This document shows positions 2,231 through 59,837 of a stretch of DNA of 64,000 nucleotides, piece after piece. The first letter of the stretch is position 1, and every line of letters begins with the position of its first letter. The translations under genes were made by a program, and so were the position numbers. The stretch spans positions 62,001-126,000 of IMG/VR virus record IMGVR_UViG_3300023296_000874; one strand, 5' to 3'. The notes beneath the pieces were generated by a model that had not been told where the DNA came from, did not search any database, and saw nothing but the letters and a program-made list of their open reading frames with translations.

Positions 2231-2449
2231 TCAAACGCCCTTGATGTCCCGTAGTCGCTTGAGCTCAAACGGGCTCGCGTGTTCGGTCCAATGGGTCCAC
2301 GGGTCCACACCCAGTTCCTTGCCGACGTACTCGATGTTCTCGAGCTCCTTGCCCAGATCCGTTTCCCCGACGCCATGTGGGTCGTCGGAGAAGAGGTCGA
2401 GGTAGAGCTCGAACAGCTCGGCAACGAATTCCTGGGTGCGTGGTGTCAC
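2231..2449 (-). CDS. hypothetical protein (72 aa, acidic)
   Basis: Start overlaps the stop of the upstream DUF3228 gene (GTGA); codon style typical of the window. Confidence 0.6.
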   Translation of the reverse strand: MTPRTQEFVAELFELYLDLFSDDPHGVGETDLGKELENIEYVGKELGVDPWTHWTEHASPFELKRLRDIKGV

Positions 2450-3090
2450 TCGGCAGTCTCCCGCGCGGCGAGCATTCCCTTGCCGTTCCAGAAGGTCACG
2501 GCAGCACGCAGGGCAGCTTCAAACTGCACGGCGTCCATGTTGGTGCTCGAGCCGCCGTCGAGGCCGAAGTGGTTCGCCATGAGCGTACCCGGCGTCATCG
2601 GCTGGTCGCCTTCGGTCAGCTTGCCGAGAAGTGTCACCACCTCCCACTCGCTGCCGTTCAGCTCGTCCAGACGCTCCGTGTCCTCTTCGAGAACCGAGCG
2701 GTTGTAGAGCACCACATCCACCCACATCGCCGCAGAAGGGATGCGCGGGCTTCCCAGCTTGTTGATGCGAGCCACCTTGGAGCTCTTGCGGGGCTTCTCA
2801 CCCTCGCGCCGAGCCTTGTACTCCACCACGAAGCGGTCGTCCGGGGTGATGTCCACCACGGGGCAGGTGAAGAAGGTCTCGTCGAACAGCGCGAACACGT
2901 TCAGCGGTACGATGATCACACCGTCCCGGTAGCCCTCACGCTGAGCCGCCCATTCGAGCTGCACTGCCTCCACAAGGATGTCCCACCGCTGGGTGCCCGC
3001 GTCGTCCAAGCACAGGAACTCCGTGAAAGAGGTTCCGGTGCGGTGGTGGTTCTTGCAGAAGCCACTGACGGTGATATCTTGTTTCGGCAT
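2446..3090 (-). CDS. DUF3228-like protein
   Basis: Motifs Y.ARR..E.P, DVVLYNR, WEVV, QPMTPGTLMAN..G..GGS, AV.FW resemble DUF3228. Start moved to ATG 3090 (AAGGA RBS), downstream of the promoter at 3131-3157. Confidence 0.65.
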   Translation of the reverse strand: MPKQDITVSGFCKNHHRTGTSFTEFLCLDDAGTQRWDILVEAVQLEWAAQREGYRDGVIIVPLNVFALFDETFFTCPVVDITPDDRFVVEYKARREGEKPRKSSKVARINKLGSPRIPSAAMWVDVVLYNRSVLEEDTERLDELNGSEWEVVTLLGKLTEGDQPMTPGTLMANHFGLDGGSSTNMDAVQFEAALRAAVTFWNGKGMLAARETAE

Positions 3091-3130
3091 TTGGGTCCGT
3101 TCCTTGGGTCGTTGTCCGTAGTGCTCCCCC

Positions 3131-3157
3131 AACGCATCACGCGGGGGAGCACTCAGA
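3131..3157 (-). promoter_or_regulatory. Class A promoter motif TCTGAGT-N16-CGTT overlapped by a 10-bp GC hairpin
   Basis: Minus strand reads tctgagt-gctcccccgcgtgatg-cgtt; inverted repeat gtgctccccc/gggggagcac at 3121-3152. Confidence 0.65.
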
Positions 3158-3165: not shown

Positions 3166-3855
3166 CTACTCGTCGGCCTCGGCTGCAGCGGCAGCAGCTT
3201 CCCGCGCGGTCTTGTTGGCGCGGTCGCAGCCTTCGATCTTGTCGATGAGCCCGTACTCCAGAGCCTCCTCGGCGGTCATCCAGTTGTCGAGCTGCATGTC
3301 GGCTTCGAGCTTCTCGAAGCTCTGGCCGCAGTTCTCGGCCAGCAGCCGGGTCAGCTTCTGGTGGAGGCGGTCTGTGTGCGCCATCGCCGCCTTCATGTCC
3401 TTGTACTTGCCCTGGTTGCCCGAGCTCAGCTCGTGGATCATGATCTCGCTGTTGGGGAGCGCCGAGCGGTTGCCCGCCGAGCCCGCACTGAGCAGGAAGC
3501 TACCCATGGAAGCCGCCATACCCACGACGGTCGTGTGGACGGGGCTGTCGATGAGCTGCATGGTGTCGTAGAGCGCGAGGCCGTCGATCACCGAGCCACC
3601 GGGGCTGTTGATGTACATCATGATGGGCTTGCCGGGAGCGTCCGCCTCGAGGAAGAGGAGCTGCCCAATGGCGATGCGCATCGAAACGCTGTCCACCTGG
3701 GTGCCGACGTAGATGATGCGGTCCCGCATGAGCCGGGAGAACAGGTCGAAACTCCGCTCCATTCGGCCATCGGATTCCACCACGACGGGGATGTTGTAGT
3801 TGGCAGGCAGTCCGCCGAGGGAGGCGAGTACTTCGAGCTGTTCACGAGTGGGCAT
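3166..3855 (-). CDS. clpP: ATP-dependent Clp protease proteolytic subunit
   Basis: IPVVVE..GRMERSFDLFSRLMRDRII, YINSPGGSV, catalytic AASMG (Ser), IMIHE (His), DNWMTAEEALEYGLID. Start set at ATG 3855 after ACGGAG. Confidence 0.95.
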   Translation of the reverse strand: MPTREQLEVLASLGGLPANYNIPVVVESDGRMERSFDLFSRLMRDRIIYVGTQVDSVSMRIAIGQLLFLEADAPGKPIMMYINSPGGSVIDGLALYDTMQLIDSPVHTTVVGMAASMGSFLLSAGSAGNRSALPNSEIMIHELSSGNQGKYKDMKAAMAHTDRLHQKLTRLLAENCGQSFEKLEADMQLDNWMTAEEALEYGLIDKIEGCDRANKTAREAAAAAAEADE

Positions 3856-3909
3856 TTGGTGCTCCGTTGAGGTCATTTTCACAGGACGGTGATCGGGTTT
3901 CAATAGTGC

Positions 3910-3948: not shown

Positions 3949-4674
3949 TCAGCCCGTCGCCCGAGCCTTGTCGCCCAACACGCTGTCGGCCGTCACGAAG
4001 GTTGCGCCCGCATCACCGAGGGTGCGGAGGCTGAAGTTCATGCCACCCTCGTCACCGCTCACGGGAGGCACATCGAGCGCCACACAGGCGTCGGTCACCA
4101 CTTCCACGGTGTAGCCACGCTCGAGCAGTCCGGTCACGAAGCCGTCAACGCAGAAGCCGCCGAGGCAGTAGCCAAACACGCGGAAGATCACGTTGTCCTT
4201 GCCGCCCATCTCTTCCACGAGGTGTGCGATGTACGCCTCAGCGATGGGGTTGCTGAAGGCGCTGTACACCTCCTTCTCGAAGTAGAGGCCGACGCCCGCA
4301 AGAGCCTCGGTCGTGAACTCCGTGGAGCCGTACACGCGGGGGCCGTTCCCAGCCTTGTCCTCGCCGATGCAGCCGTCGCCACCCCAGCTCATGGGGAGGA
4401 AGCGGAAGCGGGGAGGCAGCGTGCCGTCGAGCTTCAGCCAGTCCCAGGTGCCCTTGACGGCGTGGGTGGGGAAGATGCCACCGTTGTCGATGAACTCCCA
4501 AGCGTCGTAGCTGTGGCTGTCCACGCAGCCAATGAGGGGCTCGTTGGTGGCAAGGGCGCGAGCCACAAGGCCACGAATGCGGTCGTTGACGGTGTCGTCA
4601 GCGACGGAGAGGTTGCCGTCCTTGTGTGCGAAGGCGTTGGCGGTGTCGACGTCGACGTTGATGTAGCGGGCCAT
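3949..4674 (-). CDS. Nicotinamidase/isochorismatase-family cysteine hydrolase (PncA-like)
   Basis: Catalytic Asp (INVD), Lys (FEKEVYSAF) and Cys (GFCV); metal ligands DSH and FPTHAVKGT; G.L.V and VVTDAC motifs. Confidence 0.8.
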   Translation of the reverse strand: MARYINVDVDTANAFAHKDGNLSVADDTVNDRIRGLVARALATNEPLIGCVDSHSYDAWEFIDNGGIFPTHAVKGTWDWLKLDGTLPPRFRFLPMSWGGDGCIGEDKAGNGPRVYGSTEFTTEALAGVGLYFEKEVYSAFSNPIAEAYIAHLVEEMGGKDNVIFRVFGYCLGGFCVDGFVTGLLERGYTVEVVTDACVALDVPPVSGDEGGMNFSLRTLGDAGATFVTADSVLGDKARATG

Positions 4675-4676
4675 GA

Positions 4677-5336
4677 TCAGGTCTCCTTGGAGAAGCGGTA
4701 GGTTGTTCGTCGGCCTTTGCTCTGCTCAGTCACCGGTTCGATGACGCCCAGCGCAGTAGCCTTCTTTCTCAAGTTCGAGCTGTCTTCCGCCTTGCCCGTG
4801 ATGTGTCCCATCAGGTCGCGGTAGTCGCTCATGTTGAAGTTCATGTAGAGGAAGCCCGCAACCACGTCCGGGTCGTAGCGGTGCTTCTTGAGGAATTCCT
4901 GAGCGAACTCAAGGATGCCCCGATGGTCGAATGCAAGGTCCATGTTCAGCGCAGCGGCGAGTGGCGTCCACCCGTCGTGTCCCCTGAATACGTGGGAGAT
5001 CGGGCAGATGTGCGCCACGCTGAGCACCTTGTCGCGGGTGTCCCGGTCGAAGCCGTCAAAGACGTGCATCTGTACCGGTTGAACCTGCGCGTGTGCCTCG
5101 GGCACGTAGCGTCGTAGGGAGCGGCGTACCGCATCAAAGAGGAGTTCGTTGGGCTTCACAAACGCGCCGGGGAGCGCCAACTGGCCCATCGCCGGAGGGT
5201 TGCGCCGCCTGATGAGCTTCACGCGGAGCTCAGGGTCTACCACTACAACGTCCACCGCCAGAGGCGGGTTCTTGTACTGCGAACGGTCGTAGTCCGCAAA
5301 GTACTCTTCGTCGGTGATGTGGGTTTCGTCGGGCAC
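4677..5336 (-). CDS. NrtR-like regulator (Nudix + winged helix) with degenerate Nudix box
   Basis: Y..P.LAVDVVV, LIRR..PP..GQLALPGAFV, RD.R, LAFDH..I, C-terminal wHTH (SNLRKK...GRRTTYRF). The Nudix box reads E.LFDAVRRSLRRY and lacks the REUXEE glutamates. Confidence 0.8.
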   Translation of the reverse strand: MPDETHITDEEYFADYDRSQYKNPPLAVDVVVVDPELRVKLIRRRNPPAMGQLALPGAFVKPNELLFDAVRRSLRRYVPEAHAQVQPVQMHVFDGFDRDTRDKVLSVAHICPISHVFRGHDGWTPLAAALNMDLAFDHRGILEFAQEFLKKHRYDPDVVAGFLYMNFNMSDYRDLMGHITGKAEDSSNLRKKATALGVIEPVTEQSKGRRTTYRFSKET

Positions 5337-5426: not shown

Positions 5427-5762
5427 CTATTCGCCATCCAATTCGCTCTTGAGGTAGGAGATGGTGCGGTCGATGTCCGGGTCGGCCAGGTAGAACCGAG
5501 CCGTGTGGTAGGGAGTGGCGTCATGGTGGCGATACATCACCACGAACCAGCCTTGTGCCTCGAAATACGTCCGGAAGCCCTCATGGTCAGGGGGCCGCAG
5601 CGACACGTCTCGGTCGCTGTACCCTCGCTCTCGGAGTCGGGCCACCCAACTGGGGTAGCGAGAGAATCCCTGGATAGTGCTCTGCGCGGCTTGGTGAGCC
5701 TCTACGGTCAGTCCCACGATCTCCGGAATGAACGGGATCGGTACCTCACAGGTGTCAAGCAT
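5427..5762 (-). CDS. hypothetical protein
   Basis: ATG 5762 preceded by GGGGAG; the longer ORF-track version overlaps the neighbouring gene. Confidence 0.55.
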   Translation of the reverse strand: MLDTCEVPIPFIPEIVGLTVEAHQAAQSTIQGFSRYPSWVARLRERGYSDRDVSLRPPDHEGFRTYFEAQGWFVVMYRHHDATPYHTARFYLADPDIDRTISYLKSELDGE

Positions 5763-5805
5763 GTACTCCCCTTCTAAGCACTCAACGTGGTCAGGTACGG
5801 AATAC

Positions 5806-6120
5806 TCAGAGGTATTTCGGGTCCTGCCACCAGTCCTGGCTTTCCAAATCAAGCATCTCGTAGAGGCGGTCTGGAAGTTCCGACAGCCCTTCCTCCCTGA
5901 ACCACTCCCCACGCCACCGAATGCGGTAGCTGCGAAGTCGCCCATGGATGTAGAACTCGGTGGGTCCCTCTTTGGGGACGAGCAGGATGACCTTCAGCGT
6001 GTAGGGGTTCCCGGTCTGAAGCTCGTTGAGGCGGCGCTCAATGTCCTTGGTGCGTCCGATCTTCACCACCCCGGTCACCGCCGCTTGGATGATGTACAGG
6101 TCCTCCCCAAACGATTTCAC
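5806..6120 (-). CDS. T5orf172 / GIY-YIG superfamily nuclease
   Basis: LYIIQ....VKIGRT.DIERRL.ELQTGNP..L, E..IH..L, RGEWF. Confidence 0.85.
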   Translation of the reverse strand: MKSFGEDLYIIQAAVTGVVKIGRTKDIERRLNELQTGNPYTLKVILLVPKEGPTEFYIHGRLRSYRIRWRGEWFREEGLSELPDRLYEMLDLESQDWWQDPKYL

Positions 6121-7073
6121 AGGAAGAACGGGCTCTCCTCTACTACCGGCTGAGCAGGCAGGAGGAAAGAGACGTAGCGGGGTGAGGGGTCGAACGGATT
6201 GAACTTGCGCTTGTAGGTCGCGTTGAAGCCATGCTTGCCACCTTCACCGATGGCTACTCCATCAGCTACGTGGGTCACACCCTGTCGCGCCATGTCGGCA
6301 AAGCAGTCGTGTTGAGCCCATGCACTCAGGTTCGGTATGCCTCTGTCACATGCCATGCCTGTCGTGTGGCCCCAGCACGTTTCTGTCATGGGTTGGTTGA
6401 GGTGGATCACGAGCGGCTCTCCGTCAATGCGGTAGAGCCGGTTGATGCCGTCCTCGTAGTGCCGGTCGAGAATGTACTCGTATTTCCGGTAGTTGATGTT
6501 CATGCCGCCGCGCTCCTTGGACTCCTTGACCCAACGCTTCATCACCGCGCGGGCCTCCTCCAGGTTTCCGGAGTCGATGGGCTCAGCCGTGTAGCCGGTG
6601 GTGGTCCGCTTGAAGGCGTTGATGTCAGCTCGGAGGCGACGCCACTTCTTTCCAGAGAGTGTGTCGATCCCTGCAATGTCGTAGGTGTACTCGCCGTACT
6701 CACTGAATTTCCCAGGAGTGAGCTTGACGCCCTCTGCCATGAAGGCCGCAGCGATATCAGCGGCCCAGGAGGCTGGGACGTTCTCAATCTTGAGGTTCTT
6801 GTCCGTGCTTCCCTTGTACGCCTGCCACCACGCAACCAACTCGGGAATGACTGCGTCCTTGTCACCGTAGGCTCGGTAGACACGGTAGTATTTCCCGTAC
6901 TTCACACTGAAGAGGAGAAGCGTGTCCTCGCTGACGACCTTGTTGCCCTTGAACACTCCGTGGTTGATGAACCCGTAAGTGTAGGGGAGGCAGTCGGTCA
7001 TTGTAGCTACACCGTCCATACGTGAACGGATGAAGGGGATGTCTGCCGTGGTCAGCGGGGTAGTTTCACTCAT
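6117..7073 (-). CDS. DUF2156 / LPG-synthase C-terminal-like double-GNAT protein (putative aa-tRNA-dependent transferase), copy 2
   Basis: EYTYD....LSGKKWRRLRADINAFKR, W....K, GVTHVADG...G...K.KF.P match the DUF2156 pattern; paralogous to 7791-8759. Confidence 0.65.
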   Translation of the reverse strand: MSETTPLTTADIPFIRSRMDGVATMTDCLPYTYGFINHGVFKGNKVVSEDTLLLFSVKYGKYYRVYRAYGDKDAVIPELVAWWQAYKGSTDKNLKIENVPASWAADIAAAFMAEGVKLTPGKFSEYGEYTYDIAGIDTLSGKKWRRLRADINAFKRTTTGYTAEPIDSGNLEEARAVMKRWVKESKERGGMNINYRKYEYILDRHYEDGINRLYRIDGEPLVIHLNQPMTETCWGHTTGMACDRGIPNLSAWAQHDCFADMARQGVTHVADGVAIGEGGKHGFNATYKRKFNPFDPSPRYVSFLLPAQPVVEESPFFL

Positions 7074-7809
7074 CGAAGAGGCTCATGTATTCGTGGTCAT
7101 CACCACCCAAGATGTCCGGGTGGATCAGGCGCTCGGGAACGTCGGGAGCTTCTGCGCCGCCTGAGGTCTCCCGGTGAAGGTAGAAGGGCCGGTTGTACTT
7201 GAGAACCGTCGTAGGGAGGAAGTCCCTCGGGCCTGTGTAGTAGAAACCGTCCACGCCGGTAGATGCAGCGATGGCTGCTTCCATGCGCGGGTCAAGAGTG
7301 GCAACCGGAATGCCCTGGCTCTTGAACTTGAGCGTGATGACTGCGTAGCCCTTCTCGGCCTTGGCGTTCAAGAGGTCGAACAGCATCCCAACGTCTTCGG
7401 GTCCGGTGGTGGTGAACAGCACGCCGCAAGAGAGGACGAAGTCCCACGTCGGGGCCTTGTTCAGCTCTTCCCAGTAGTTCCCGATGCGGAAGTCGTACTC
7501 CGGCACTCGGGTTCGGGCGTCCAGCACGTTGGCAGGGACGATGTCGAACCCTTGGTACTTCAGCTCGGGCCTCTGGTCGCGTAGCATCTCAGCCAGCGTG
7601 CCCGTGCCGCACCCACACTCGAGAATGGAGGTGGCGTTGGCTGGGATCAGGTCGATGAGGCCCTGCCAATGAGCAACCATGTCCTCGGGAGAGTACTTGT
7701 ACCACTTGAAGCGGGTGGTGTCGTCAGGGTCCTCGTACTTCCCGGCTGACCGAGTGTAGGAGTCCCGCCAACGGAGGATCGTTTCATCTGCTACTGGAAT
7801 GGAAGACAT
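7066..7809 (-). CDS. Class I SAM-dependent methyltransferase
   Basis: SILECGCGTG motif I, YQGFDI motif II, WDFVLSCGVL. Confidence 0.85.
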   Translation of the reverse strand: MSSIPVADETILRWRDSYTRSAGKYEDPDDTTRFKWYKYSPEDMVAHWQGLIDLIPANATSILECGCGTGTLAEMLRDQRPELKYQGFDIVPANVLDARTRVPEYDFRIGNYWEELNKAPTWDFVLSCGVLFTTTGPEDVGMLFDLLNAKAEKGYAVITLKFKSQGIPVATLDPRMEAAIAASTGVDGFYYTGPRDFLPTTVLKYNRPFYLHRETSGGAEAPDVPERLIHPDILGGDDHEYMSLFDE

Positions 7810-8759
7810 TCATCATCCTCATACTTGCCGTCAATGGCCAGCCTGACACCGGACACGGCACCCTCGATAGGGCGGAATTTGTCCTTGTTCTTGAAGTTGG
7901 CGACACGCTGTCCATCTGCGATGTGCGTGACGCCGCGTTGCTGAAGAAGGCAGAACGCCTCCCAGCTTGACCACTCCCACAGGCCTCGGGGCCTGAACAG
8001 CGTGCCGTCTTCCTGCTCGGTGCCCAAAGCAATCCCAAGAGTGTGAGCCCAGCACGTGTCGGTGATCTTGTGCATGATCTGAAGGGCTACGGGCTCTCCC
8101 GCCACCTTGTAGAGCAGATGCATACAATCGTCGGTCCTGAAGTTGTCGAAGGCGTAGGTGTACTGCTTGAAGTTGAGGTTGAAGACGTTCCTCACCTTCC
8201 TTGCCTGACGTGCCCACTCCTTGATGACGTACCATGCCTCCGTGTGCGTGACGTCCTCTACAACCTGGATCACTTCCCGTTCGGGGTTGTCCCTCTTGAA
8301 CTTATTGAGGTCCCGGCGAAGCCTGACGTACTTCTTGCCCGGCATCTCGGTGATGCAGTCGATGGGAATCACGTCCTCGGGCCACACGTTGCGCTCCACG
8401 GAGCCAGCGATGGTGTCGAGGTACGGGAAGAGTGCCTGTCCGGTCTCCTCCGCGAGGTACATGAAGATCAGCTTGTCAGCCTCGTCGCGATAGCGGGCAA
8501 TCCACGCCTTGAGCAGCTCAAGCTGGTCAGGCAGTGGTCCCCAAGAGCGGTAGACGCGGTAGTAGGTCTTCCCCTTGCCACGTTTGATGTGAAACAGCAA
8601 TGCCGCCGTGTCACTCTCGTAGAGATGCGCCTTGAAGGAGCTGTTCGCTCCCAGTGCGTAGGGAGGGCAGTCGTAGTAGCTCAGACTGTCCTCAGGTACG
8701 AGCGAGGCTACACGCGCCGCTGACGCTGGGGTCATGTCTGTCGTCTGAATGTCAGTCAT
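7791..8759 (-). CDS. DUF2156-like double-GNAT protein, copy 1
   Basis: EMPGKKYVRLRRDLNKFKR, YYRVYR, TCWAHTLG, GVTHIADG, K.KFRP. Clear paralog of 6117-7073. Confidence 0.65.
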   Translation of the reverse strand: MTDIQTTDMTPASAARVASLVPEDSLSYYDCPPYALGANSSFKAHLYESDTAALLFHIKRGKGKTYYRVYRSWGPLPDQLELLKAWIARYRDEADKLIFMYLAEETGQALFPYLDTIAGSVERNVWPEDVIPIDCITEMPGKKYVRLRRDLNKFKRDNPEREVIQVVEDVTHTEAWYVIKEWARQARKVRNVFNLNFKQYTYAFDNFRTDDCMHLLYKVAGEPVALQIMHKITDTCWAHTLGIALGTEQEDGTLFRPRGLWEWSSWEAFCLLQQRGVTHIADGQRVANFKNKDKFRPIEGAVSGVRLAIDGKYEDDECLPFQ

Positions 8760-9603
8760 TCATCTTGTCCGGCTGCATGAAGGTTTGCCTCACTCCGATT
8801 ACCCAGAACAAGTCACCTGGCTCGATAAAGGGAATCGATTTCGCTTCATAGATCGGGTCAAGAGCGATACCACGCCAATACGGGTCCTTGTAGGGCTGAT
8901 GGTAGTCGAGAGGAGAGCGAACGAGCGTGACCATGTCCTTCCAATGGGTGTCACGGATGTTGACCATGACGTCGCTGTCAGCTTCTTCCCACATGGAGGA
9001 GTAGTCGTTGGTGATGGGAGCGTACTTTCCAAGCCTGTCGTTGGGGTCTGCGCCCACTACAACGCCGAGCACGGGTACGTCCCACCCAATGTCGAGCAGT
9101 CCGTGGAGAAGGCCGGACAGGCTCATAGCTGAACCCACAGGAATGACGATGCGCTTCGCTTCTCGTGGAAGGTTCGCTGCCTGCCCACGGGTCTGCTGCA
9201 CGGCTTCCCAGCAATCCATTCCGAAGGGGATGTCTGCCCACCCGAGCCTCTTGGCGTCTTCCCGAGCTCGAGAGATGATGACGCTGTTGTAGCCCGCGCG
9301 GTGTTGAACCACCTCAGCTCCAGCGGCCTTGGCAGCGAGTACCTCGGGCGACAATTCACCTTCGGGAGTGTGAACCCTACACGGAATGCCGAGCTTCTGG
9401 GCGATGTGGGCGACGATGTTCACCTGCGGGCTGGATCGGCTACCCGCCGTCACCAAACCCTTCGCTCCTTGAGCGAGGTGCCAACAGGTGCGAACTTTCC
9501 CACCCGGTACTCCTCCTACAATGAACTTGTCGTCGCGCTTGACCCACACATCCCCGTGTTTCTCAACAGGGGTGAGGGCCTTGGGGTCCGTTACATGATC
9601 CAC
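8752..9603 (-). CDS. Fold-type II PLP-dependent enzyme (ACC-deaminase/TrpB-like; phage hypermodification-type)
   Basis: LTPVE...VWVKRDD....GGKVR (PLP lysine), VIPVGSAMSLSG phosphate loop, LDPIYEAK, LFWVIG. Confidence 0.85.
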   Translation of the reverse strand: MDHVTDPKALTPVEKHGDVWVKRDDKFIVGGVPGGKVRTCWHLAQGAKGLVTAGSRSSPQVNIVAHIAQKLGIPCRVHTPEGELSPEVLAAKAAGAEVVQHRAGYNSVIISRAREDAKRLGWADIPFGMDCWEAVQQTRGQAANLPREAKRIVIPVGSAMSLSGLLHGLLDIGWDVPVLGVVVGADPNDRLGKYAPITNDYSSMWEEADSDVMVNIRDTHWKDMVTLVRSPLDYHQPYKDPYWRGIALDPIYEAKSIPFIEPGDLFWVIGVRQTFMQPDKMND

Positions 9604-9664
9604 GTACTGTCCTCCGAGTGGTGCTCAGAGTCCAGTAACGGTCGAAAACGGTCCAAGTAGGCAA

Positions 9665-9994
9665 TCAGACCCGCTTCGTCACCTTGACTACTGCTTGGTA
9701 GAGGTCCGGCAGGCTCTCTTTGCCGCCCTTGGACTCTACGTTGTCCCAGTGAATGAGTGCCACAACCTGCGCGGTGTGGTCTCCATCAGCCATCCGCCTG
9801 GCAAGCTGTCCACCATCTCGAGCAGCGCCCTTCCGATCCGCGTCGGGAGAGGTGTACTCGTACTTGCCGGAGTCGGTCAAGCCTCGTGGTCGTCGGTCAG
9901 CGGCCCGGAGGATGTCCTTCCAGTTCGGATGGGGGAGGTCAGCCAGCAGTTCAGCGTGCTTCAAGGTGTCAATTCGGATGACGTGGTCTTGCAT
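9665..9994 (-). CDS. hypothetical protein
   Basis: Translationally coupled to rmlA (TGATG overlap). Confidence 0.6.
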   Translation of the reverse strand: MQDHVIRIDTLKHAELLADLPHPNWKDILRAADRRPRGLTDSGKYEYTSPDADRKGAARDGGQLARRMADGDHTAQVVALIHWDNVESKGGKESLPDLYQAVVKVTKRV

Positions 9995-10719
9995 CAGATC
10001 TCCCTCAGGGTGTCACGGATGTACGCGCCAGCTCTGAACAGTGATTCAAACGTTCCAGCGTCCGTCCACCACCCGTCACATACCCTGAAGCTGAGCTCGC
10101 CGCTTCGGAGGTAGTAGAGATGGAGGTCGGTCACTTCGAGCTCGCCCCGTTCGGAGGGCTCAAGTCGGTCAATCACGTCCCACACACGCCGGTCAAAGCA
10201 GTAGAGGCCCGTGATTGCGAGTGGGGAGATGTACTCTTTCGGCTTCTCGATGATGTGGGTCACCTTGGGGCCGCGCACCACAGCTACGCCGAAGCGGTGA
10301 GGGTCGTCCACCTCTTTGAGGAGGATGCGCCCACCACTGTCGAAGGAGCGGATGAAGTCCTCGGTCACACCAGGCTCGAACACGTTGTCGCCCAAGATGA
10401 CACACACGTCATCCCCGTCAACGAAGTCCTTGGCGTAATGCAGAGCAGCGGGGATACCGCCAGCTCCATCCTGGTAGGTGTAGTGGATGTTCACCTCGGG
10501 GCCGAAGGTCTTCTTCCCGTTGCCCAAGAGCTGAAGGAAGTCACCTGCCCAGTTGCCCCCGGTCACGATCATGATCTCTGTCACCCCTGCGCCCACGAGT
10601 GTCGCGATTGGGTAGTGAATCATGGGCTTGTCGTAGATCGGAAGCAGGTGCTTGTTGGTGACGGCGGTCAGCGGTAGTAGTCGCGAGCCGTACCCGCCTG
10701 CCAAGATGACTCCTTTCAT
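9994..10719 (-). CDS. rmlA: Glucose-1-phosphate thymidylyltransferase (RmlA/SpsI short form)
   Basis: MKGVILAGGYGSRLLPLT..TNKHLLPIYDKPMI, LGDN, IIEKP, SERGELEVTD, WTDAGT. Confidence 0.9.
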   Translation of the reverse strand: MKGVILAGGYGSRLLPLTAVTNKHLLPIYDKPMIHYPIATLVGAGVTEIMIVTGGNWAGDFLQLLGNGKKTFGPEVNIHYTYQDGAGGIPAALHYAKDFVDGDDVCVILGDNVFEPGVTEDFIRSFDSGGRILLKEVDDPHRFGVAVVRGPKVTHIIEKPKEYISPLAITGLYCFDRRVWDVIDRLEPSERGELEVTDLHLYYLRSGELSFRVCDGWWTDAGTFESLFRAGAYIRDTLREI

Positions 10720-10745: not shown

Positions 10746-10773
10746 CTACAAATGGATCATGATCCTTTTGTAG
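10746..10773. promoter_or_regulatory. Back-to-back pair of class B (putative late) promoter motifs
   Basis: Near-palindrome ctacaaatggaTCATGAtccttttgtag gives TCATGATCCATTTGTAG on minus (toward rmlA) and TCATGATCCTTTTGTAG on plus (toward 10810). Confidence 0.7.
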
Positions 10774-12275: not shown

Positions 12276-12685
12276 GCGACAAGACCGCCGCCCGCACCCT
12301 ACGTGAGTTCCTCCTGGCCGGGCAGACTGGACAGGACGATACTCGTGAGCTGCTCCCCTACTCAGGTGTGAACGGACCCAAGGTTCGGACCCTCCCAGAG
12401 GCCATCGCACACTCCAAGACCACGTCAGAGGACAGTGAGGAGTGGTTCAAGGCGAACACCCCGTACCACGGGCGTGATGTGATCGAGCACTTCGACGAGC
12501 TTGTGGGGCAGTTCACCGGGGCAGAGGTACGACCTCGTCCCGGTAGGGACGTTGACCTCATCTCAGGGAAGAGCGGACTCCAAACAAAGGGCTACAGCGA
12601 GGACCACTACACCGCTGTGCCTCAGACCTTCGAGGAGCTTTGCCTCGCGGCAATGGACCAAGAAGGCAAGACACCAAGGGAGTAG
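12272..12685 (+). CDS. hypothetical protein
   Basis: ATGA overlap with the upstream stop; begins MSDKTAART. Confidence 0.6.
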   Translation: MSDKTAARTLREFLLAGQTGQDDTRELLPYSGVNGPKVRTLPEAIAHSKTTSEDSEEWFKANTPYHGRDVIEHFDELVGQFTGAEVRPRPGRDVDLISGKSGLQTKGYSEDHYTAVPQTFEELCLAAMDQEGKTPRE

Positions 12686-12686
12686 C

Positions 12687-13499
12687 GTGAAGCTTTCAAC
12701 TGAAATCGCAGGACTCACCCGTCGCGCGAACGTCGAGAGTGTGACCAAGCACATCCAGACGTGGGGTGACAACGAACTTCGTCACCCGACCCGGTGGCAG
12801 AACGTCATCTACCTCTGCTATGAGCTCGCCAAGAGCACTCAGACCATCGCGGTTGGCGGACCTACATGGGACGGGCCGATGCGAGAGTGGGTCTACGTCA
12901 TGCCTGATGGCATTGGTGTAGAGATGAAGGGCCTTGTGTTCAATCTTGAGCCTGAGGCCTGGTACTACGAGGTTGGGATGGCACCCTGGCCCGACGCCCG
13001 GTCGCTTGAGTTCATCGGCCACAGAGACCACTGGACCCGTGTGTGGTACTGGGTGCTTGCGACGTTGGCTGTCCACGCCGCGAACGGAAAGCCCTATGCC
13101 GGTGTGGAGCGAGTAGTCAAAGGCCGACTCGCGGGCGTGACGTACTTGCAGGGCATGGTTGACCGCATCCTCCCCAAAGCTATTGAGGCGTACCGCAAGG
13201 TTCGCGGCTTTGACCCCAGCCTTGGTGAGTTGAGCGTGTCCTTTTCGGAGATCGTTCCGCCCGATGGGAAGATCGCCGTCTACCAACGGTTCGACTGCAA
13301 AGCCAAGCAGTGCGAGGGTGCCATCAGCATTCACCCGAAGGCTCTACGTGACGAGGGTGGTGAACAGTATCTCGAAACGGTACTCACCCATGAACTTGTC
13401 CACTATCTACTCAACTCGACCAACGCGGCTGACGCCCACGGAGGAGAATTCCAAGCAGTTTCAACACTGCTCGGAATCCCCCGTGAATTCCAGGACTAA
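12687..13499 (+). CDS. SprT-like zinc metalloprotease domain protein with shared leader
   Basis: C-terminal ISIHP...LETVLTHELVH....HGGEF (SprT HExxH...HG..F). GTG start at 12687 after GGGAG gives the leader STEIAGLTRRA. Confidence 0.7.
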   Translation: MKLSTEIAGLTRRANVESVTKHIQTWGDNELRHPTRWQNVIYLCYELAKSTQTIAVGGPTWDGPMREWVYVMPDGIGVEMKGLVFNLEPEAWYYEVGMAPWPDARSLEFIGHRDHWTRVWYWVLATLAVHAANGKPYAGVERVVKGRLAGVTYLQGMVDRILPKAIEAYRKVRGFDPSLGELSVSFSEIVPPDGKIAVYQRFDCKAKQCEGAISIHPKALRDEGGEQYLETVLTHELVHYLLNSTNAADAHGGEFQAVSTLLGIPREFQD

Positions 13500-13502
13500 C
13501 CA

Positions 13503-14024
13503 ATGACAACATCAGCGAACATCAAGAACCTCTCCGGCACCGTTAGTGCTCGCAAGCCACGCGCCCCGAAGCCTGGCGAGGTGTACCAGGACCCTGAGTC
13601 GAAAGAGTGGCTTCTGCTCCCCAAGAAGTACAACTCCAAGCCTGTGCGGATTGACGCACTGCTCCAGGTAGGCGGACTACCTCGACGTCAGGGCGACAAG
13701 GTGACACTCTGGTTCTTCAGGGACCCACCCGAGGGACACAGGTACTGGACCGACATGCACGATCCCGGCGTGGAGATTGACTACAGCAACTACCACATCG
13801 CTCTGGACTACGGACGGTACTTCTTCAGGAAGCAGGACGCTCTCAAGAACGCGAGCACCTGGGACACAGGCAAGGTGGTTGGCCTCATGTCGCTGGACCT
13901 TGACCGCCTGATGCAGAATGGACAGTTCAAGCGCAACGTCGCCCTCAAGACGAAGGGGCGCGGTGCCTCCGGAGGTACGGACGTCACCTCCGGACCGTAC
14001 CTCTACGTGAAGGGCAAGTTCTAA
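13503..14024 (+). CDS. hypothetical protein with shared leader
   Basis: Begins MTTSANIKNLSGTVSA, similar to MTTSAEISLLARSYIA of 53958-54194. Confidence 0.65.
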   Translation: MTTSANIKNLSGTVSARKPRAPKPGEVYQDPESKEWLLLPKKYNSKPVRIDALLQVGGLPRRQGDKVTLWFFRDPPEGHRYWTDMHDPGVEIDYSNYHIALDYGRYFFRKQDALKNASTWDTGKVVGLMSLDLDRLMQNGQFKRNVALKTKGRGASGGTDVTSGPYLYVKGKF

Positions 14025-14299
14025 GCCTGAAGGTTCGTGACGCCGATGAGCTCCCCGAGCAGCGTGCGGCTGAGAGGTTTGCCAGGCTTGTCCTCGTACA
14101 CCTCCCGAACCACGATGCGCTGTGGCGTGCTCTTGGGCACGGACCCCCAGCCCTTGGTGTTGGGAGTGACGTCTGCTGCTGCTTCGTCCCGCATCTTGCA
14201 GTAGACGGCTTGCAGGGTGAGGTCACTGGCATGTCGCATGGTGCCGAAGACGGGCGTCTTGGACGTCAGCCGGTACAGCACATAGATGTATCCGTTCAT
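14021..14299 (-). CDS. hypothetical protein
   Basis: ATG 14299 with GAGG RBS, overlapping the stop of 14296-14487. Confidence 0.55.
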   Translation of the reverse strand: MNGYIYVLYRLTSKTPVFGTMRHASDLTLQAVYCKMRDEAAADVTPNTKGWGSVPKSTPQRIVVREVYEDKPGKPLSRTLLGELIGVTNLQA

Positions 14300-14487
14300 C
14301 GCACAACCTCGAGCGTGTAAGCGGTGAGGCCGAAGCCGCAACCGACGTGATCCTCGGCCCAGGCAATCGCCTGCTCGATGCGGGTGAAGGTCTTGCGGCG
14401 CTTGGGGTCGTCGGTGCGCTGCACACATTGGTGCTCTTCACTGAAGCCCGCGATGTCTTTGCCGCTTTGGTCTTTGAGGTAGTGCAT
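14296..14487 (-). CDS. hypothetical protein (63 aa)
   Basis: ATG 14487 preceded by CGGAG, downstream of a class A promoter. Confidence 0.6.
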   Translation of the reverse strand: MHYLKDQSGKDIAGFSEEHQCVQRTDDPKRRKTFTRIEQAIAWAEDHVGCGFGLTAYTLEVVR

Positions 14488-14492
14488 GGTGT

Positions 14493-14533
14493 CTCCGTAC
14501 CCACTCAACGAGAGCAGGTACGGAGGACTCAGA
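14493..14533 (-). promoter_or_regulatory. Class A promoter TCTGAGT-N16-CGTT (14507-14533) with RBS-sequestering hairpin
   Basis: tctgagt-cctccgtacctgctct-cgtt; inverted repeat ctccgtacc/ggtacggag (14493-14525) pairs with the GGAG RBS. Confidence 0.7.
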
Positions 14534-14535
14534 GA

Positions 14536-14703
14536 CTATGACACGTCCTTCACGTAGCTACCCGGACAGGCGAGGTTCCCGTCCTTGTCTTGAATGGACG
14601 TGTTGGTACACCTCTTCCGGAGGGGGAGTCTGGTCCACCTCACTCTGAACCCGCAGGTGTCGCAGATGTACATCGACTTCAGCAGTGGCATTCGGAACCG
14701 CAT
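14536..14703 (-). CDS. 55-aa zinc-ribbon microprotein (below the ORF-track cutoff)
   Basis: Hand translation MRFRMPLLKSMYICDTCGFRVRWTRLPLRKRCTNTSIQDKDGNLACPGSYVKDVS; GAGGTG RBS. Confidence 0.6.
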   Translation of the reverse strand: MRFRMPLLKSMYICDTCGFRVRWTRLPLRKRCTNTSIQDKDGNLACPGSYVKDVS

Positions 14704-14707
14704 CGGA

Positions 14708-14887
14708 TCACCTCTTCTTGAGAGCGATGCCGTAGCAGATCATCCGGGTGCCACAGGGCTCAACGACCTGCCTCCCGTTTCTTCCTGCGTACTCGACGGG
14801 GTTGGGGCATGAGGGGCGCAGGATGAGCCCGCGCTTGATGAAGGTGTGCCCACATGAGGGGCAGCGGTATTCCTTGGGGACGATCAT
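14708..14887 (-). CDS. 59-aa zinc-ribbon microprotein
   Basis: YRCPSCG...CPN...PCG; same Cys layout as 14536-14703. Confidence 0.6.
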   Translation of the reverse strand: MIVPKEYRCPSCGHTFIKRGLILRPSCPNPVEYAGRNGRQVVEPCGTRMICYGIALKKR

Positions 14888-15666: not shown

Positions 15667-15683
15667 CTACAAACGGATTATGT
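15667..15683 (-). promoter_or_regulatory. Class B (putative late) promoter motif
   Basis: Minus strand ACATAATCCGTTTGTAG, overlapping the topA stop. Confidence 0.7.
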
Positions 15684-27042: not shown

Positions 27043-27843
27043 TTAGGAGTCCTTACGCTCCACCGGGAGTGTACTCCTGATGCCCCATGTGTTCTTCGCC
27101 CAGAAGGTCTCGAGTGCGAAGTAGCCGCCGAGCATGGTGATCTGGTACGTGAGAACGGGCACCCAAGGCACCGAGCCGAGTAGGGCGGTAAACACTCCCA
27201 GCATCACCACCGCGCTTGTTGTCCGGTACGTCAGGGCCTTGGCGGCGCTGCGCTTGGTCTCTACCTGATCGTCCTCGGTGATGCCGAAGTTGCTGTCGTG
27301 CCACAGGCGCTCATGCACCAGGCTGAAGAAGGTCATCATCACCGAGTAGCCGGTGAGCAGCCACAGGCTCAGTCCGAGCTTCCAAAGCACAAGGGAAAAT
27401 ACTCCGAGTGCGAGGGTGCGGTAGAGCAGCATCTTGGCTGCCGTCCGGTAGCCGGTGCTCATGGCGCTGCGGTCCGGTTCCCAAGGCACACGTCCACGGC
27501 ACCGGTCGTAGGTGCGGAAGCCGAAGATGGCGATGGGGTACACGATGGGCTCACCGTGTAGGAGCAGCACGATGGGGATGAGCTCGGGGAGGCCGACGTT
27601 CCAGAGGATGATGGGGATCACCACGTCCTCGAACAGTTCCCACACCACGGCGAAGACGAAGAAGCGGGGGCCTTGGCTCTTGAGCAGCTTCTTGAGCTCG
27701 CGCCAAGTTTCGAAGATGTTGACCTTCTCCCAGATCTCTCCGGCAGCCCAGCACCATGCACGTCGTAGATGTTTCAGCACTTCTGAACCTCCGTGTTGTA
27801 CTGGAAACGCATCCAGTGTCCGGAAACTCAGAGGTGTGGTCAA
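27043..27843 (-). CDS. membrane protein with two DUF2061-like repeats
   Basis: RTAAKMLLYR...VHERLW and RSAAKALTYR...ALETFW repeats; several TM helices. Confidence 0.6.
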   Translation of the reverse strand: MTTPLSFRTLDAFPVQHGGSEVLKHLRRAWCWAAGEIWEKVNIFETWRELKKLLKSQGPRFFVFAVVWELFEDVVIPIILWNVGLPELIPIVLLLHGEPIVYPIAIFGFRTYDRCRGRVPWEPDRSAMSTGYRTAAKMLLYRTLALGVFSLVLWKLGLSLWLLTGYSVMMTFFSLVHERLWHDSNFGITEDDQVETKRSAAKALTYRTTSAVVMLGVFTALLGSVPWVPVLTYQITMLGGYFALETFWAKNTWGIRSTLPVERKDS

Positions 27844-28106
27844 TCGTCCTTGAAGAGCAGGTCGATGCGGTTGGAGGGCTGTACTTCCTCGACACCCTTG
27901 GCGGTGTCCTCAAAGGCCACTGAGAGGGTCACGTCGTAGGTGTTGACGTTGATGAGGTCTACGTCGTCCATCCGTGCAATCTTGGCTTCCATCCGTGCTA
28001 CCGCAAGGGTGAGAGCCTGCTTGAGTGTGGTGCAACCCTCTTCAATCAGATTGCCGACGACCTCGTGGTCGATGTCGATGTGTAGCGTGATTTTACCGTG
28101 CGGCAT
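27840..28106 (-). CDS. hypothetical protein
   Basis: Coupled ORF. Confidence 0.55.
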   Translation of the reverse strand: MPHGKITLHIDIDHEVVGNLIEEGCTTLKQALTLAVARMEAKIARMDDVDLINVNTYDVTLSVAFEDTAKGVEEVQPSNRIDLLFKDD

Positions 28107-58270: not shown

Positions 58271-59275
58271 ATGATACTCCTTGTAATCGCTGTAACCGCA
58301 GTTGTACTTGCCTCGGCGCTCTGCTCCGGCTCTGAAGCCGCCTTGATGGCAATGCCCAACGTGCGTGTTCGCCAGCTCGCGGAGGAAGGTGGCTCAACAG
58401 CCGCCATACTGCTCCGGTTGAAAGACAACCTCGACAGGCCCATTGCTGCCATCGTGGTTCTCAACAACATCGCCAACATCGTCGGCTCCATCGTGGTTGG
58501 TGGGATTGCTACTGACGTGCTCGGAAGTGCCTACCTCGGTGCCTTCTCAGCCGTGTTGACCTTCGCCATCATCCTCTTCGCAGAGATCATCCCCAAGAGC
58601 ATCGGCACCAACTACCCGGAGCGCATCAGCCTCCTGATTGCACGACCGCTCAGTGCGATCTCGTGGTTGCTGACCCCGGCACTCTGGATGCTCGAACAGG
58701 TGACCAAGCTCATTGGCGGACCCAACGGTGCTACGGCAGCGGACGAGGCTACCTTGCGCTTCATGGTGCGGGAAGCCGGACGTGAGGACCAGATTGAGGA
58801 GGATGAGCGCGACATGATCCTCCGGGTGTTCAGCCTCAACGACCTGACCGCCAGCGACATCATGACTCCCCGTACCGCGATGACCTACCTCCGCGCTGAC
58901 CTGACTGCCAAGGAGCAGGAGGCCCAGATCAAGGCGTCACAGCACTCCCGCATCATCGTTGTGGGTGAGACGCTCGACGACGTGGTGGGCGTGGTGATGC
59001 TGAGGGACTTGCTCCTCTCGCTCATGAATGGCGGACTGCTACCGAAGCCTGTGCCTGCCGCCTTTGTCAGCCCCGACATGCCCGCCGATGAGCTCATGCG
59101 GCACTTCCTACCCGCGCGGAACCACATGGCTCTCGTGCGGGGAGAGTACGGCGCGGTACATGGCTTGGTGACCCTCGAGGACGTCCTTGAGATCGTTGTT
59201 GGCGAAGAGATTGTTGACGAGACTGACCGTGACGACGACATGCAGGCTGTTGCACGGGACCGCGCTACATCCTGA
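58271..59275 (+). CDS. CNNM/CorB-family (DUF21 + CBS) Mg2+/metal transport protein
   Basis: SALCSGSEAAL, LNNIANI, IILFAEIIPKS, DIMTPR, HSRI.V, EYG...GLVTLEDVLE.VVG.EIVDETD. Confidence 0.92.
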   Translation: MILLVIAVTAVVLASALCSGSEAALMAMPNVRVRQLAEEGGSTAAILLRLKDNLDRPIAAIVVLNNIANIVGSIVVGGIATDVLGSAYLGAFSAVLTFAIILFAEIIPKSIGTNYPERISLLIARPLSAISWLLTPALWMLEQVTKLIGGPNGATAADEATLRFMVREAGREDQIEEDERDMILRVFSLNDLTASDIMTPRTAMTYLRADLTAKEQEAQIKASQHSRIIVVGETLDDVVGVVMLRDLLLSLMNGGLLPKPVPAAFVSPDMPADELMRHFLPARNHMALVRGEYGAVHGLVTLEDVLEIVVGEEIVDETDRDDDMQAVARDRATS

Positions 59276-59553: not shown

Positions 59554-59837
59554 TCGGACGCACCATCACCTGCTACCCGATGGACGGGACCAAGCCCCAG
59601 TTCGAACTCGAAATCACGAACAGTGGGCGCGGGCTCATTGATCTTCGTGTCAAAGGGACAGGCGACGGTGTGAACTGGACCGGATTCCAGTTCGACGGCT
59701 ACAACCGACCGCATCAGTTCAAACCCGAGTGGCTGCATACAGTCCGCTTCCACGGCTACCTCATCAAGGGCAGCGGCAAAAACCGCGACGTGATGGAGGT
59801 GGACTTCTGGCTGAAGGAGATAGACAGTGCCGACTGA
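59550..59837 (+). CDS. hypothetical protein
   Basis: ATGA coupling with the upstream gene. Confidence 0.55.
   Translation: MIGRTITCYPMDGTKPQFELEITNSGRGLIDLRVKGTGDGVNWTGFQFDGYNRPHQFKPEWLHTVRFHGYLIKGSGKNRDVMEVDFWLKEIDSAD

Follow-up and report, generated by a model that had tools for sequence, protein, structure and literature searches.

What does a large phage gain from a tightly packed set of genes encoding a PLP enzyme, two MprF/Fem-like proteins of the kind that take amino acids from charged tRNA, a methyltransferase and a small nuclease-like protein? The set is carried by a 257-kb phage and was analysed within a 64,000-nt stretch (hereafter the window) covering positions 62,001 to 126,000 of IMG/VR record IMGVR_UViG_3300023296_000874. 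The observation made by the sequence-only reading holds: all genes that it named are present on the minus strand between positions 10719 and 5806, and most have overlapping stops and starts. Its interpretation, namely tRNA-dependent aminoacylation of a base or sugar followed by PLP decarboxylation or elimination and by methylation, possibly on a dTDP-sugar-derived moiety, with a virion glycan as the alternative target, is supported only in part. The reading retained here is that the cassette decorates the phage's own DNA, a tentative one since the use of DNA as acceptor is inferred.

The operon starts with rmlA (10719-9994, minus strand), a 241-residue short-form glucose-1-phosphate thymidylyltransferase (PF00483, E=2e-43; PDB 3hl3, E=6e-67), whose TIGR01208 score of 208 bits lies below the equivalog cut-off of 320. 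The next ORF (9994-9665, minus strand; 109 aa) has no Pfam, PHROG or NCBIfam hit and no homologue by blastp in L005 or L004, or by tblastn in L021, these being loci of related phages described below. It is followed on the same strand by a fold-type II PLP enzyme (9603-8752; 283 aa; PF00291, 51 bits), DUF2156-a (8759-7791; 322 aa; PF09924, 37.6 bits against a cut-off of 27.5), a class I SAM-dependent methyltransferase (7809-7066; 247 aa), DUF2156-b (7073-6117; 318 aa; PF09924, 40.2 bits) and a T5orf172/MUG113 (GIY-YIG-like) protein (6120-5806; 104 aa; PF13455, 41.7 bits, and PF10544, 40.8 bits). The overlaps are 1 nt between rmlA and the 109-aa ORF (TGATG), 8 nt between the PLP gene and DUF2156-a, 19 nt between DUF2156-a and the methyltransferase, 8 nt between the latter and DUF2156-b, and 4 nt between DUF2156-b and T5orf172 (GTGA). 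The only gap, of 61 nt, separates the 109-aa ORF from the PLP gene. GC3 is 0.68-0.78, as in the other genes. Downstream, a 172-aa ORF (5945-5427) overlaps T5orf172 by 140 nt; it more likely starts at the ATG at 5762, behind a GAAGGGGA ribosome-binding site, yielding a 111-aa product.

The sequence-only reading gave the operon a class B (late) motif. A 28-nt palindrome is found at 10746-10773, about 54 nt upstream of rmlA in the divergent rmlA/orf188 intergenic region. This promoter- or operator-like site is unique in the window, with 0 expected. Its half-site, CTACAAAYG, occurs four times on the plus strand of the window against 0.4 expected, and twice upstream of plus-strand genes in L005. 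No sigma-70-type promoter was found, and nothing shows when the site is active. The locus lies among replication genes, including those for topoisomerase, HU, DNA polymerase, helicases and primase.

The two DUF2156 proteins are 29% identical to each other (E=3e-34), and neither possesses a hydrophobic segment (maximum Kyte-Doolittle value over 19 residues of 0.85 or less), so that their description as soluble and duplicated is right. Both display the full tandem-GNAT DUF2156/MprF-C/Fem architecture; its absence had been named beforehand as grounds for rejecting the proposal, and this ground does not apply. DUF2156-b matches PDB 2hqy (E=2e-4), a structure without known function, and its AF2 model has a pLDDT of 91. 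Foldseek returns TM values of 0.72-0.80 to 2hqy, 0.58-0.64 to MprF-C and 0.60-0.66 to FemX, above the 0.47-0.58 of the acyl-CoA tandem GNATs, and the ESM Atlas agrees. The most conserved motif of the family is a basic helix with 5-8 K/R in 22 residues (8 in DUF2156-a), which aligns to the MprF helix that binds the tRNA acceptor stem in aminoacyl-tRNA transferases (PMC6103681). In contrast, no conserved CoA-binding Q/RxxGxG/A motif was found. In the tree, DUF2156-a groups with the L005 and L004 copies (support 87/83) and is the positional orthologue of the single copy in related phages, while a fragment orthologous to DUF2156-b, P0006, exists elsewhere.

Compared with the aminoacyl-phosphatidylglycerol synthase domain of MprF (PF09924; PDB 2hqy, 4v36, 4v34/35, 5vrv, 6lv0), both proteins share the fold over the full length and the basic helix, but identity is only 14-19%, there is no flippase or membrane element, and they are phage-encoded, duplicated and in an operon with a PLP enzyme and a methyltransferase. 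The FemX/FemA/FemB transferases of peptidoglycan synthesis likewise are tandem-GNAT paralogues acting in one pathway, each adding one residue to an amine; however, there is no Fem family (PF02388) hit here and the operon contains no cell-wall genes. A new feature is an acidic C-terminal tail ending in LF or FF, shared by the DUF2156 proteins and the methyltransferases: DDECLPFQ in DUF2156-a, EESPFFL in DUF2156-b and HEYMSLFDE in the methyltransferase. It is found only on these proteins (3 of the 4 matching frames among 494 in the window) and recurs in the orthologues.

The PLP enzyme is the conserved anchor of the locus and belongs to a large phage family, with 849 relatives found. Lys36 and the Gly/Ser loop are invariant in 17 homologues. 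About 50 of 70 IMG/VR homologues are fusions of ParB_N, an N6/N4 DNA methylase and the PLP domain; ParB partners are known in phage DNA hypermodification clusters (PMC13229309). These fusions tie the PLP enzyme to DNA modification. In such fusions, as exemplified by Pseudanabaena phage Pam4 gp70, the PLP domain is 40-63% identical to the window protein, whereas in the window phage and its clade the PLP enzyme stands alone, without a ParB/methylase partner nearby. The literature searches performed found no description of this fusion family. Besides its own PHROG family (phrog_3650, E=2e-34), the only other PHROG family that the enzyme matches is phrog_7093 (E=9.5e-8), that of M6 gp52, and gp52 hits phrog_3650 in return. 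M6 gp52, which decarboxylates glycine carried on DNA, and ViI gp226 are PLP-dependent decarboxylases of thymidine hypermodification (PMC8989533); like the window protein they are short fold-II enzymes of about 280 residues, with the lysine at position 36 in both. An hhalign comparison with gp52 covers the full length with Lys36 aligned (E=7e-5, probability 64%), a distant similarity that is about as strong as that to ACC deaminase (1j0a).

The methyltransferase has Methyltransf_25/12/23/31 hits and a motif I reading ILECGCGTG; its structural neighbours are small-molecule and lipid methyltransferases, not DNA methylases, and its orthologues in L005, L004, L017 and L021 are 43-67% identical. T5orf172 is always the last gene of the module, with orthologues in the same position in L005, L021 and L017/L018 at 50-75% identity, and conserved LYIIQ, KIGR, GEWF and C-terminal DWW motifs.

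The arrangement is rare: only about five loci were found in more than 10^9 proteins (the window, L005/L006, L021, L004 and L017), all in one clade of large phages spanning GC 39-63%. DUF2156 occurs with the methyltransferase in these five, and the PLP gene is adjacent in all four loci where the flank is visible. Start/stop overlaps occur throughout, and L005 shows the different order DUF-PLP-MTase. DUF2156, PLP enzyme, methyltransferase and T5orf172 co-occur in related phages. In contrast, rmlA (absent from L005, L021 and two further loci, L013 and L014) and the second paralogue are missing from every related locus. A dTDP-sugar moiety or a virion glycan is thus not part of the conserved system, and that reading is weak. 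No glycosyltransferase was seen among the window ORFs scanned with Pfam.

The order of steps in the sequence-only reading is not the most natural one either. Two sister phages keep the PLP gene without DUF2156 or the methyltransferase, so the PLP enzyme does not depend on them. Moreover, an aminoacyl ester or amide has no free carboxylate, which makes PLP decarboxylation directly after tRNA-dependent transfer chemically awkward. That the DUF2156 genes occupy the position of the aGPT-Pplase transferases is analogy only: no 5-hmdU kinase, amino-acid:DNA transferase, hydroxymethylase or N6/N4 methylase was found in the window or in about 120 kb of clade DNA, nor does a radical SAM isomerase lie nearby, and whatever would install the first group is therefore not accounted for. 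Further evidence weighs against DNA as the acceptor. No DUF2156 enzyme is known to act on nucleic acid, the known acceptors being lipids, sterols and a hydroxylamine (PMC6103681, PMC9437257), the two proteins are not basic overall (pI 5.9 and 7.05), and the methyltransferase looks like small-molecule or lipid methyltransferases rather than DNA methylases. Since all five loci belong to one clade in which the PLP gene sits at this spot anyway, adjacency could reflect an insertion hot spot. A precedent does exist in Mom of phage Mu, which transfers glycine from Gly-tRNA to the N6 of adenine in dsDNA (PMC13219725) and is the only known case of charged tRNA donating to DNA. Mom is also a phage-encoded member of the GNAT superfamily, but it is a single GNAT domain with its own insertion, works alone, and has no detectable sequence relationship with the present proteins (hhalign probability 0.2%).

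Among the alternatives, the one that survives best, though it is unlikely, is that the cassette tailors a small molecule: the DUF2156 enzymes would aminoacylate a metabolite, a nucleotide-sugar or a signalling molecule from charged tRNA, to be finished by the PLP enzyme and the methyltransferase, and the product could be an antimetabolite or a counter-defence compound. The models are tRNA-dependent natural-product pathways, such as those of dehydrophos (DhpH/DhpK/DhpI), valanimycin (VlmA) and the streptothricin-type Sbb17. The late steps of dehydrophos biosynthesis use the same four enzyme types, namely the DhpH PLP domain plus GNAT, DhpK and the DhpI O-methyltransferase. The use of tRNA by DhpH and DhpK is documented (PMC6103681). 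Foldseek also finds the aminoacyl-tRNA-dependent peptide synthases Sbb17 and Sba18, the methyltransferase resembles small-molecule enzymes, rmlA could supply a nucleotide-sugar acceptor in this phage, and NAD-salvage genes lie next door. However, the GNAT subfamily differs from that of dehydrophos, the setting is a phage replication region, there are no phosphonate genes, and Pfam scans of the window revealed no scaffold-building genes (PEP mutase, NRPS and the like). Furthermore, rmlA is not conserved, and this reading explains neither the ParB_N and DNA methylase fusions of most PLP relatives in phages nor the shared tails.

It is less likely still that the genes do not form one pathway, DUF2156-MTase-T5orf172 being a mobile cassette carried by a GIY-YIG-type homing endonuclease that landed in a variable spot next to an unrelated PLP gene. 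Its cargo would act on protein N-termini (a ClpP gene lies 2 kb downstream) or tRNA itself, or would drain charged tRNA. The patchy presence within one clade while the PLP gene stays put, the constant 3' position of T5orf172, its better conservation (50-75%) relative to the DUF2156 proteins (30-36%), and the absence of the tail from the PLP enzyme are in line with this view. In contrast, L005 places the PLP gene between DUF2156 and the methyltransferase, with an 11-nt overlap, which a simple side-by-side insertion does not predict; the PLP and DUF2156-a genes overlap here as well, and the set is kept across GC 39-63%. Finally, remodelling of the cell envelope, by aminoacylation of a host membrane lipid (as by MprF) or a peptidoglycan precursor (as by FemX), for example to block superinfection or alter surface charge, is the least likely: despite the lipid and sterol acceptors of all characterised DUF2156 enzymes (PMC6103681, PMC9437257), the structural similarity to MprF-C and FemX, and cyclopropane-fatty-acyl-phospholipid synthases among the methyltransferase's neighbours, there is an acidic tail instead of a transmembrane or amphipathic C-terminal helix, the isolated MprF catalytic domain does not make aminoacyl-PG in vivo (PMC8131360), the nearest cellular relatives are soluble archaeal-type DUF2156 proteins and not MprF, a PLP enzyme has no obvious role in such a scheme, and the module sits in the replication region.

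The locus is therefore best explained, tentatively, as an accessory tailoring cassette of a phage DNA-base hypermodification pathway. The folds, family memberships, gene linkage and domain fusions were established by the analysis, whereas the use of tRNA, DNA as the acceptor, the order of steps and the role of the tails are inferred. In this view, the conserved core is the PLP enzyme, taken to process an amino-acid-type side chain carried on DNA as its distant relative M6 gp52 does, and it is joined in a subset of the clade by one or two soluble DUF2156 enzymes and a class I methyltransferase. The PLP enzyme would help produce an amine- or hydroxyl-bearing modified base. The DUF2156 enzymes would then acylate that group with an amino acid from charged host tRNA, two paralogues adding two residues or serving two sites, as the Fem enzymes do in sequence, and the methyltransferase would cap the product. 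The shared tails would dock the DUF2156 proteins and the methyltransferase on one partner, for which a replisome component is a guess. T5orf172 would be either a nuclease that spares modified DNA or the homing endonuclease that moves the cassette, and RmlA a lineage-specific addition rather than a core part. Any DNA activity of these DUF2156 proteins would be a recruitment independent of that of Mom.

The 64-kb window is part of IMGVR_UViG_3300023296_000874, a 257,533-bp phage contig also listed as Ga0222664_1000010, and starts near contig position 62,004. Its GC content is 59%. The first 39 kb carry replication and nucleotide-related genes: topoisomerase IA, HU, AAA ATPases, a family A DNA polymerase, DnaB-like and SNF2-like helicases, PhoH, and a primase-like zinc ribbon. 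A VanY-type lysis enzyme and tail and baseplate genes follow, among which sit a CNNM/CBS transporter-like gene and a radical SAM protein of 304 aa (58271-59275 and 59827-60741, + strand), the latter showing no similarity to the M6 gp53 isomerase. A second IMG/VR contig (L103, IMGVR_UViG_3300022821_000113, 23.9 kb) shares an exact 40-mer with the end of the window; a closely related phage was therefore sampled independently.

The operon described in the sequence-only reading is present, and that observation is confirmed. On the minus strand at 10719-5806 lie rmlA, a 109-aa ORF, a fold-II PLP enzyme (8752-9603), DUF2156-a (7791-8759), a class I SAM methyltransferase (7066-7809), DUF2156-b (6117-7073), and a T5orf172/MUG113 protein. 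Stops and starts overlap by 1, 8, 19, 8, and 4 nt, and the only gap, of 61 nt, precedes the PLP gene. Downstream on the same strand are a small ORF, an NrtR-like Nudix regulator, a nicotinamidase-like isochorismatase, and ClpP. The small ORF can be read as 172 aa (5427-5945), overlapping T5orf172 by 140 nt, but the ATG at 5762 behind a GAAGGGGA site gives a more plausible 111-aa protein (5762-5427), which has no homologue in the related loci. The Nudix regulator and the nicotinamidase-like protein (3949-5336, - strand) form an NAD-salvage block directly downstream of the module; in the related locus L005 (13335-18715), this block also contains NAPRT-like, NadE, and PRPP synthetase genes, and it may counter NAD-depleting host defences. 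Further along the minus strand, the phage encodes ClpP, a DUF3228 protein, and an SPFH/Band 7 protein (3166-3903, 2446-3132, and 1015-2133).

The two DUF2156 proteins (318-322 aa) are 29% identical over their full length. Both match LPG_synthase_C (PF09924), the aminoacyl-tRNA transferase domain of MprF, with 37.6 and 40.2 bits against a gathering cut-off of 27.5, and the relatives P0003, P0004, and P0007-P0010 also carry this domain. With a 28-sequence alignment, AlphaFold2 gave a confident model of DUF2156-b (pLDDT 91.2, pTM 0.87), whereas a model from a two-sequence alignment reached only pLDDT 45 and was discarded. The predicted fold comprises two GNAT domains in tandem covering the whole protein; for DUF2156-a, it is inferred from the 29% identity. 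Foldseek against the PDB ranks first the soluble Bacteroides DUF2156 protein 2hqy (TM 0.72-0.80), followed by the MprF synthase domains (0.58-0.64), then FemX (0.60-0.66) and the aminoacyl-tRNA-dependent peptide synthases Sbb17 and Sba18, while acyl-CoA tandem GNATs score lower. The ESM Atlas agrees (TM 0.75-0.80 over residues 1-308). In contrast, BFVD contains no viral structural match better than TM 0.45.

The best conserved stretch of the family is a Lys- and Arg-rich segment running from GKK to NxFKR (residues 141-156), with 5-8 K/R in 22 residues. It is a helix in the model (residues 142-157) and aligns with the corresponding segment of MprF and 2hqy. A positively charged helix that binds the tRNA acceptor stem is the feature common to Fem, L/F-transferase, and aaPGS enzymes (PMC6103681), and a similar role is inferred here on that basis. 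The proteins lack the flippase domain and the membrane-inserting C-terminal helix of MprF proper: no hydrophobic segment is found (Kyte-Doolittle over 19 residues is 0.85 or less), and the C-terminus is acidic and disordered. No conserved CoA-binding motif was found, and hhalign of the 28-sequence DUF2156 profile against Mu Mom gives a probability of 0.2%, hence no detectable similarity. The sequence-only reading had named absence of the double-GNAT architecture as grounds for rejecting its hypermodification proposal; this test does not refute it, although the use of tRNA itself stays inferred.

These proteins are rare. An exhaustive profile search of 1.84 billion representatives returned only 30 hits, of which only four full-length proteins and two fragments form the phage clade. 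This clade is monophyletic (support 99/99), and its nearest relatives are soluble DUF2156 proteins from cellular, partly archaeal, contigs; the contexts of these distant relatives (P0007-P0010) were uninformative. INPHARED has no DNA match to the locus and no tblastn match to DUF2156-a. Word-based protein searches found only the protein itself for DUF2156-b and two relatives for the methyltransferase. A double methyltransferase-like protein, P0153 at locus L019, was examined and is not part of the module.

Four related loci were found. L005/L006, from a 478-kb phage scaffold, has the order DUF2156, PLP, methyltransferase, T5orf172 and, further on, NrtR and PncA. L021, a 44.7-kb contig of 38.6% GC, reads PLP, DUF2156, methyltransferase, T5orf172, NrtR, PncA, ClpP, and also keeps the DUF3228 gene. 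L004, a 2-kb contig, carries the PLP C-terminus, a 57-aa ORF, DUF2156, and the methyltransferase. L017/L018, 2-kb contigs, carry the DUF2156 C-terminus, the methyltransferase, an 86-aa ORF, and T5orf172. All are syntenic with the window around topoisomerase, HU, and the AAA ATPase, so they belong to one phage clade. Core proteins are 57-72% identical between them, the methyltransferase 43-67%, T5orf172 50-75%, and the DUF2156 proteins only 30-36%. rmlA and a second full-length DUF2156 gene occur only in the window phage, although a 64-aa fragment (P0006) shows that DUF2156-b orthologues exist elsewhere. Two sister phages, L013 and L014, keep the PLP gene at the same place without DUF2156, methyltransferase, or T5orf172. 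In L013, the AAA ATPase gene next to HU and topoisomerase carries an intein with a LAGLIDADG domain (12284-14831). L005 encodes a CCA-adding enzyme of the PolyA_pol family (7425-8663) three genes upstream of its DUF2156 gene; no counterpart and no tRNA genes were found in the window.

The PLP enzyme is the anchor of the locus, and it points to DNA. It has 849 relatives, the best 120 of which are 52-99% identical to it, and Lys36 and a Gly/Ser loop are invariant. In 70 IMG/VR loci (within the series L023-L101), about 50 copies are embedded in proteins of 430-1160 aa, which Pfam and PHROGs resolve as ParB_N, N6/N4 DNA methylase, PLP, and a methylase-like C-terminus. Pseudanabaena phage Pam4 gp70 (L002) is a cultured example. 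No description of this architecture was found in the literature searched, and it looks like an uncharacterised DNA modification enzyme in its own right. ParB-like partners are already known in phage DNA hypermodification clusters (PMC13229309). However, no ParB/methylase partner lies near the PLP gene here: phmmer of the proteins from the first 38 kb of the window against the fusion family found only the PLP enzyme, a 13-bit hit to a 679-aa protein being a low-complexity artefact.

Within PHROGs, the PLP enzyme hits its own family, phrog_3650 (E=2e-34), and next phrog_7093 (E=9.5e-8), the family of M6 gp52, which decarboxylates glycine carried on thymidine in DNA (PMC8989533); gp52 hits phrog_3650 in return. 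A profile alignment covers both proteins end to end with the lysine at position 36 in each (E=7e-5, probability 64%), while BLASTP gives only E=0.12. This points to distant homology between related but distinct families rather than to membership. The kinase, transferase, and hydroxymethylase components of a thymidine (5-hmdU) hypermodification cluster were not found: tblastn with M6 gp51, gp53, gp54, and gp58 against the window, L005, L006, L021, L013, L014, L004, L017, and a further locus, L001, gave no hit at E<=0.01, hence no M6-type 5-hmdU DNA kinase, amino-acid:DNA transferase (aGPT-Pplase), radical SAM isomerase, or dUMP hydroxymethylase in about 120 kb of clade DNA, a search that leaves out roughly 190 kb of this genome.

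The methyltransferase has a standard motif I, and its weak best matches are small-molecule, sugar, or lipid methyltransferases. A CmoA-like enzyme, as in the Cx-SAM-dependent 5cxmC pathway (PMC12783734), was considered and dropped, since NCBIfam gave no CmoA hit. The T5orf172 protein matches PF10544 (40.8 bits) and PF13455 (41.7 bits), and four orthologues keep the GIY-YIG-like motifs LYIIQ, KIGR(T/S), and GEWF as well as a C-terminal DWW; a nuclease function is inferred from this similarity only. RmlA is a genuine short-form homologue, matching 3hl3 (E=6e-67) and about twenty further RmlA entries (E=1e-44 to 1e-52) over residues 1-236. It does not, however, reach the NCBIfam equivalog cut-offs (208 against 320 bits), so this homology does not settle its sugar and nucleotide specificity.

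A unique, perfect 28-nt palindrome (10746-10773) lies in the divergent rmlA/orf188 region, 54 nt upstream of rmlA. Its half-site CTACAAAYG occurs four times in the window against 0.4 expected (also at 15667, 54997, and 57588, + strand) and at 6413 and 6950 in L005; at three sites (window 10746, L005 6413 and 6950) it lies about 55-65 nt upstream of the nearest + strand gene. It is probably a phage promoter or operator class and may be the "class B (late) motif" of the sequence-only reading, but nothing shows that it is late. A sigma-70 scan found no promoter, and the only two terminator-like hits lie on the + strand inside coding sequence, fewer than in shuffled sequence.

A further feature is shared by two of the enzyme types. 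Every DUF2156 protein and every methyltransferase of the module ends in a short acidic stretch followed by LF or FF: EESPFFL, DDECLPFQ, and HEYMSLFDE in the window (C-termini of 6117-7073, 7791-8759, and 7066-7809, - strand), DEASPFF and EESPFFKTE in L005, YECLFET and YESLFE in L017, EEQNLFAT in L004, and DSLPFFE and EETFFIS in L021. The pattern was written after the tails had been seen. Even so, only 4 of 494 frames in the window match it, and 3 of them are these genes; the fourth is an 88-aa ORF next to the primase-like zinc-ribbon gene (27840-28106, - strand), ending in a similar acidic LLF tail (IDLLFKDD). In L005, the only two matches are the two module genes. The PLP enzyme, T5orf172, and RmlA lack the tail. 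Such tails recall, by analogy only, the acidic C-termini ending in an aromatic residue with which SSB, T7 gp2.5 and gp4, or clamp-binding proteins dock on replisome partners, and they suggest that the two enzyme types share a docking partner.

These genes recur together, in two different orders and with translational coupling, across phages of very different GC content, although all module loci come from one phage clade. That argues that they work together. The PLP gene is kept where the others are missing, which argues that it is the core and the others are add-ons. The most coherent model, held tentatively, is a DNA-base hypermodification in which DUF2156 enzymes acylate a group on the base from charged tRNA and the methyltransferase caps the product. 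In this view, the number of paralogues would set the number of residues, as in the Fem system. The hypermodification proposal of the sequence-only reading is supported in part. Its order of reactions, aminoacylation first and PLP decarboxylation second, is less likely, because an aminoacyl ester or amide has no free carboxylate. Family memberships, gene linkage, and domain fusions are read from the sequences, and the tandem-GNAT fold from a confident predicted structure; catalysis with aminoacyl-tRNA, DNA as the acceptor (for which the context, namely the DNA link of the PLP family and the position in the replication region, is only indirect), the order of steps, and the role of the tails are all inferred.

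A farther-reaching version of this model is more doubtful. Tandem-GNAT DUF2156 enzymes would be a second, independently evolved class of tRNA-dependent DNA-modifying enzymes, extending an amine- or hydroxyl-bearing hypermodified base with one or two amino acids. A dedicated methyltransferase would cap the product, and both enzymes would be brought to replicating DNA by the shared acidic tail, the PLP partner belonging to a widespread, uncharacterised ParB-methylase-PLP DNA modification system.

Among the alternatives, tailoring of a small molecule survives best, although it is unlikely; scaffold-forming genes expected beside the transferases in a tRNA-dependent peptide pathway of the dehydrophos type, such as PEP mutase, did not appear among the Pfam hits of the window ORFs scanned. 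An unrelated mobile cassette driven by the putative T5orf172 endonuclease is less likely still. Modification of envelope lipids or peptidoglycan is about as improbable, the lipid reading being weakened by the lack of any membrane element and by the finding that the isolated MprF catalytic domain is inactive in vivo (PMC8131360). The virion-glycan and dTDP-sugar idea of the sequence-only reading has little support, since rmlA is not conserved and no glycosyltransferase was seen among the scanned ORFs.

PLP tailoring of DNA-borne amino acids is known from M6 and ViI (PMC8989533), and tRNA-dependent DNA aminoacylation from Mom (PMC13219725). A tandem-GNAT DUF2156 enzyme in the latter role, in series with a PLP enzyme and a methyltransferase, has not been described; in the literature searched, the one paper mentioning both DUF2156 and phage is unrelated. 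The large phage family of ParB, N6/N4 methylase, and PLP fusion proteins brought out here is more common and probably a more tractable target. Even if the acceptor is not DNA, the proteins described here would be the first described phage DUF2156 enzymes and, being soluble, a convenient model for a family whose soluble members, including the solved 2hqy, have no known function. Only one enzyme, Mom, is known to move an amino acid from charged tRNA onto DNA. A second, unrelated enzyme class doing the same, in series with a PLP enzyme and a methyltransferase, would mean that phages can build peptide-like decorations on bases, which would widen the known chemistry of restriction evasion and give new tools for DNA labelling.
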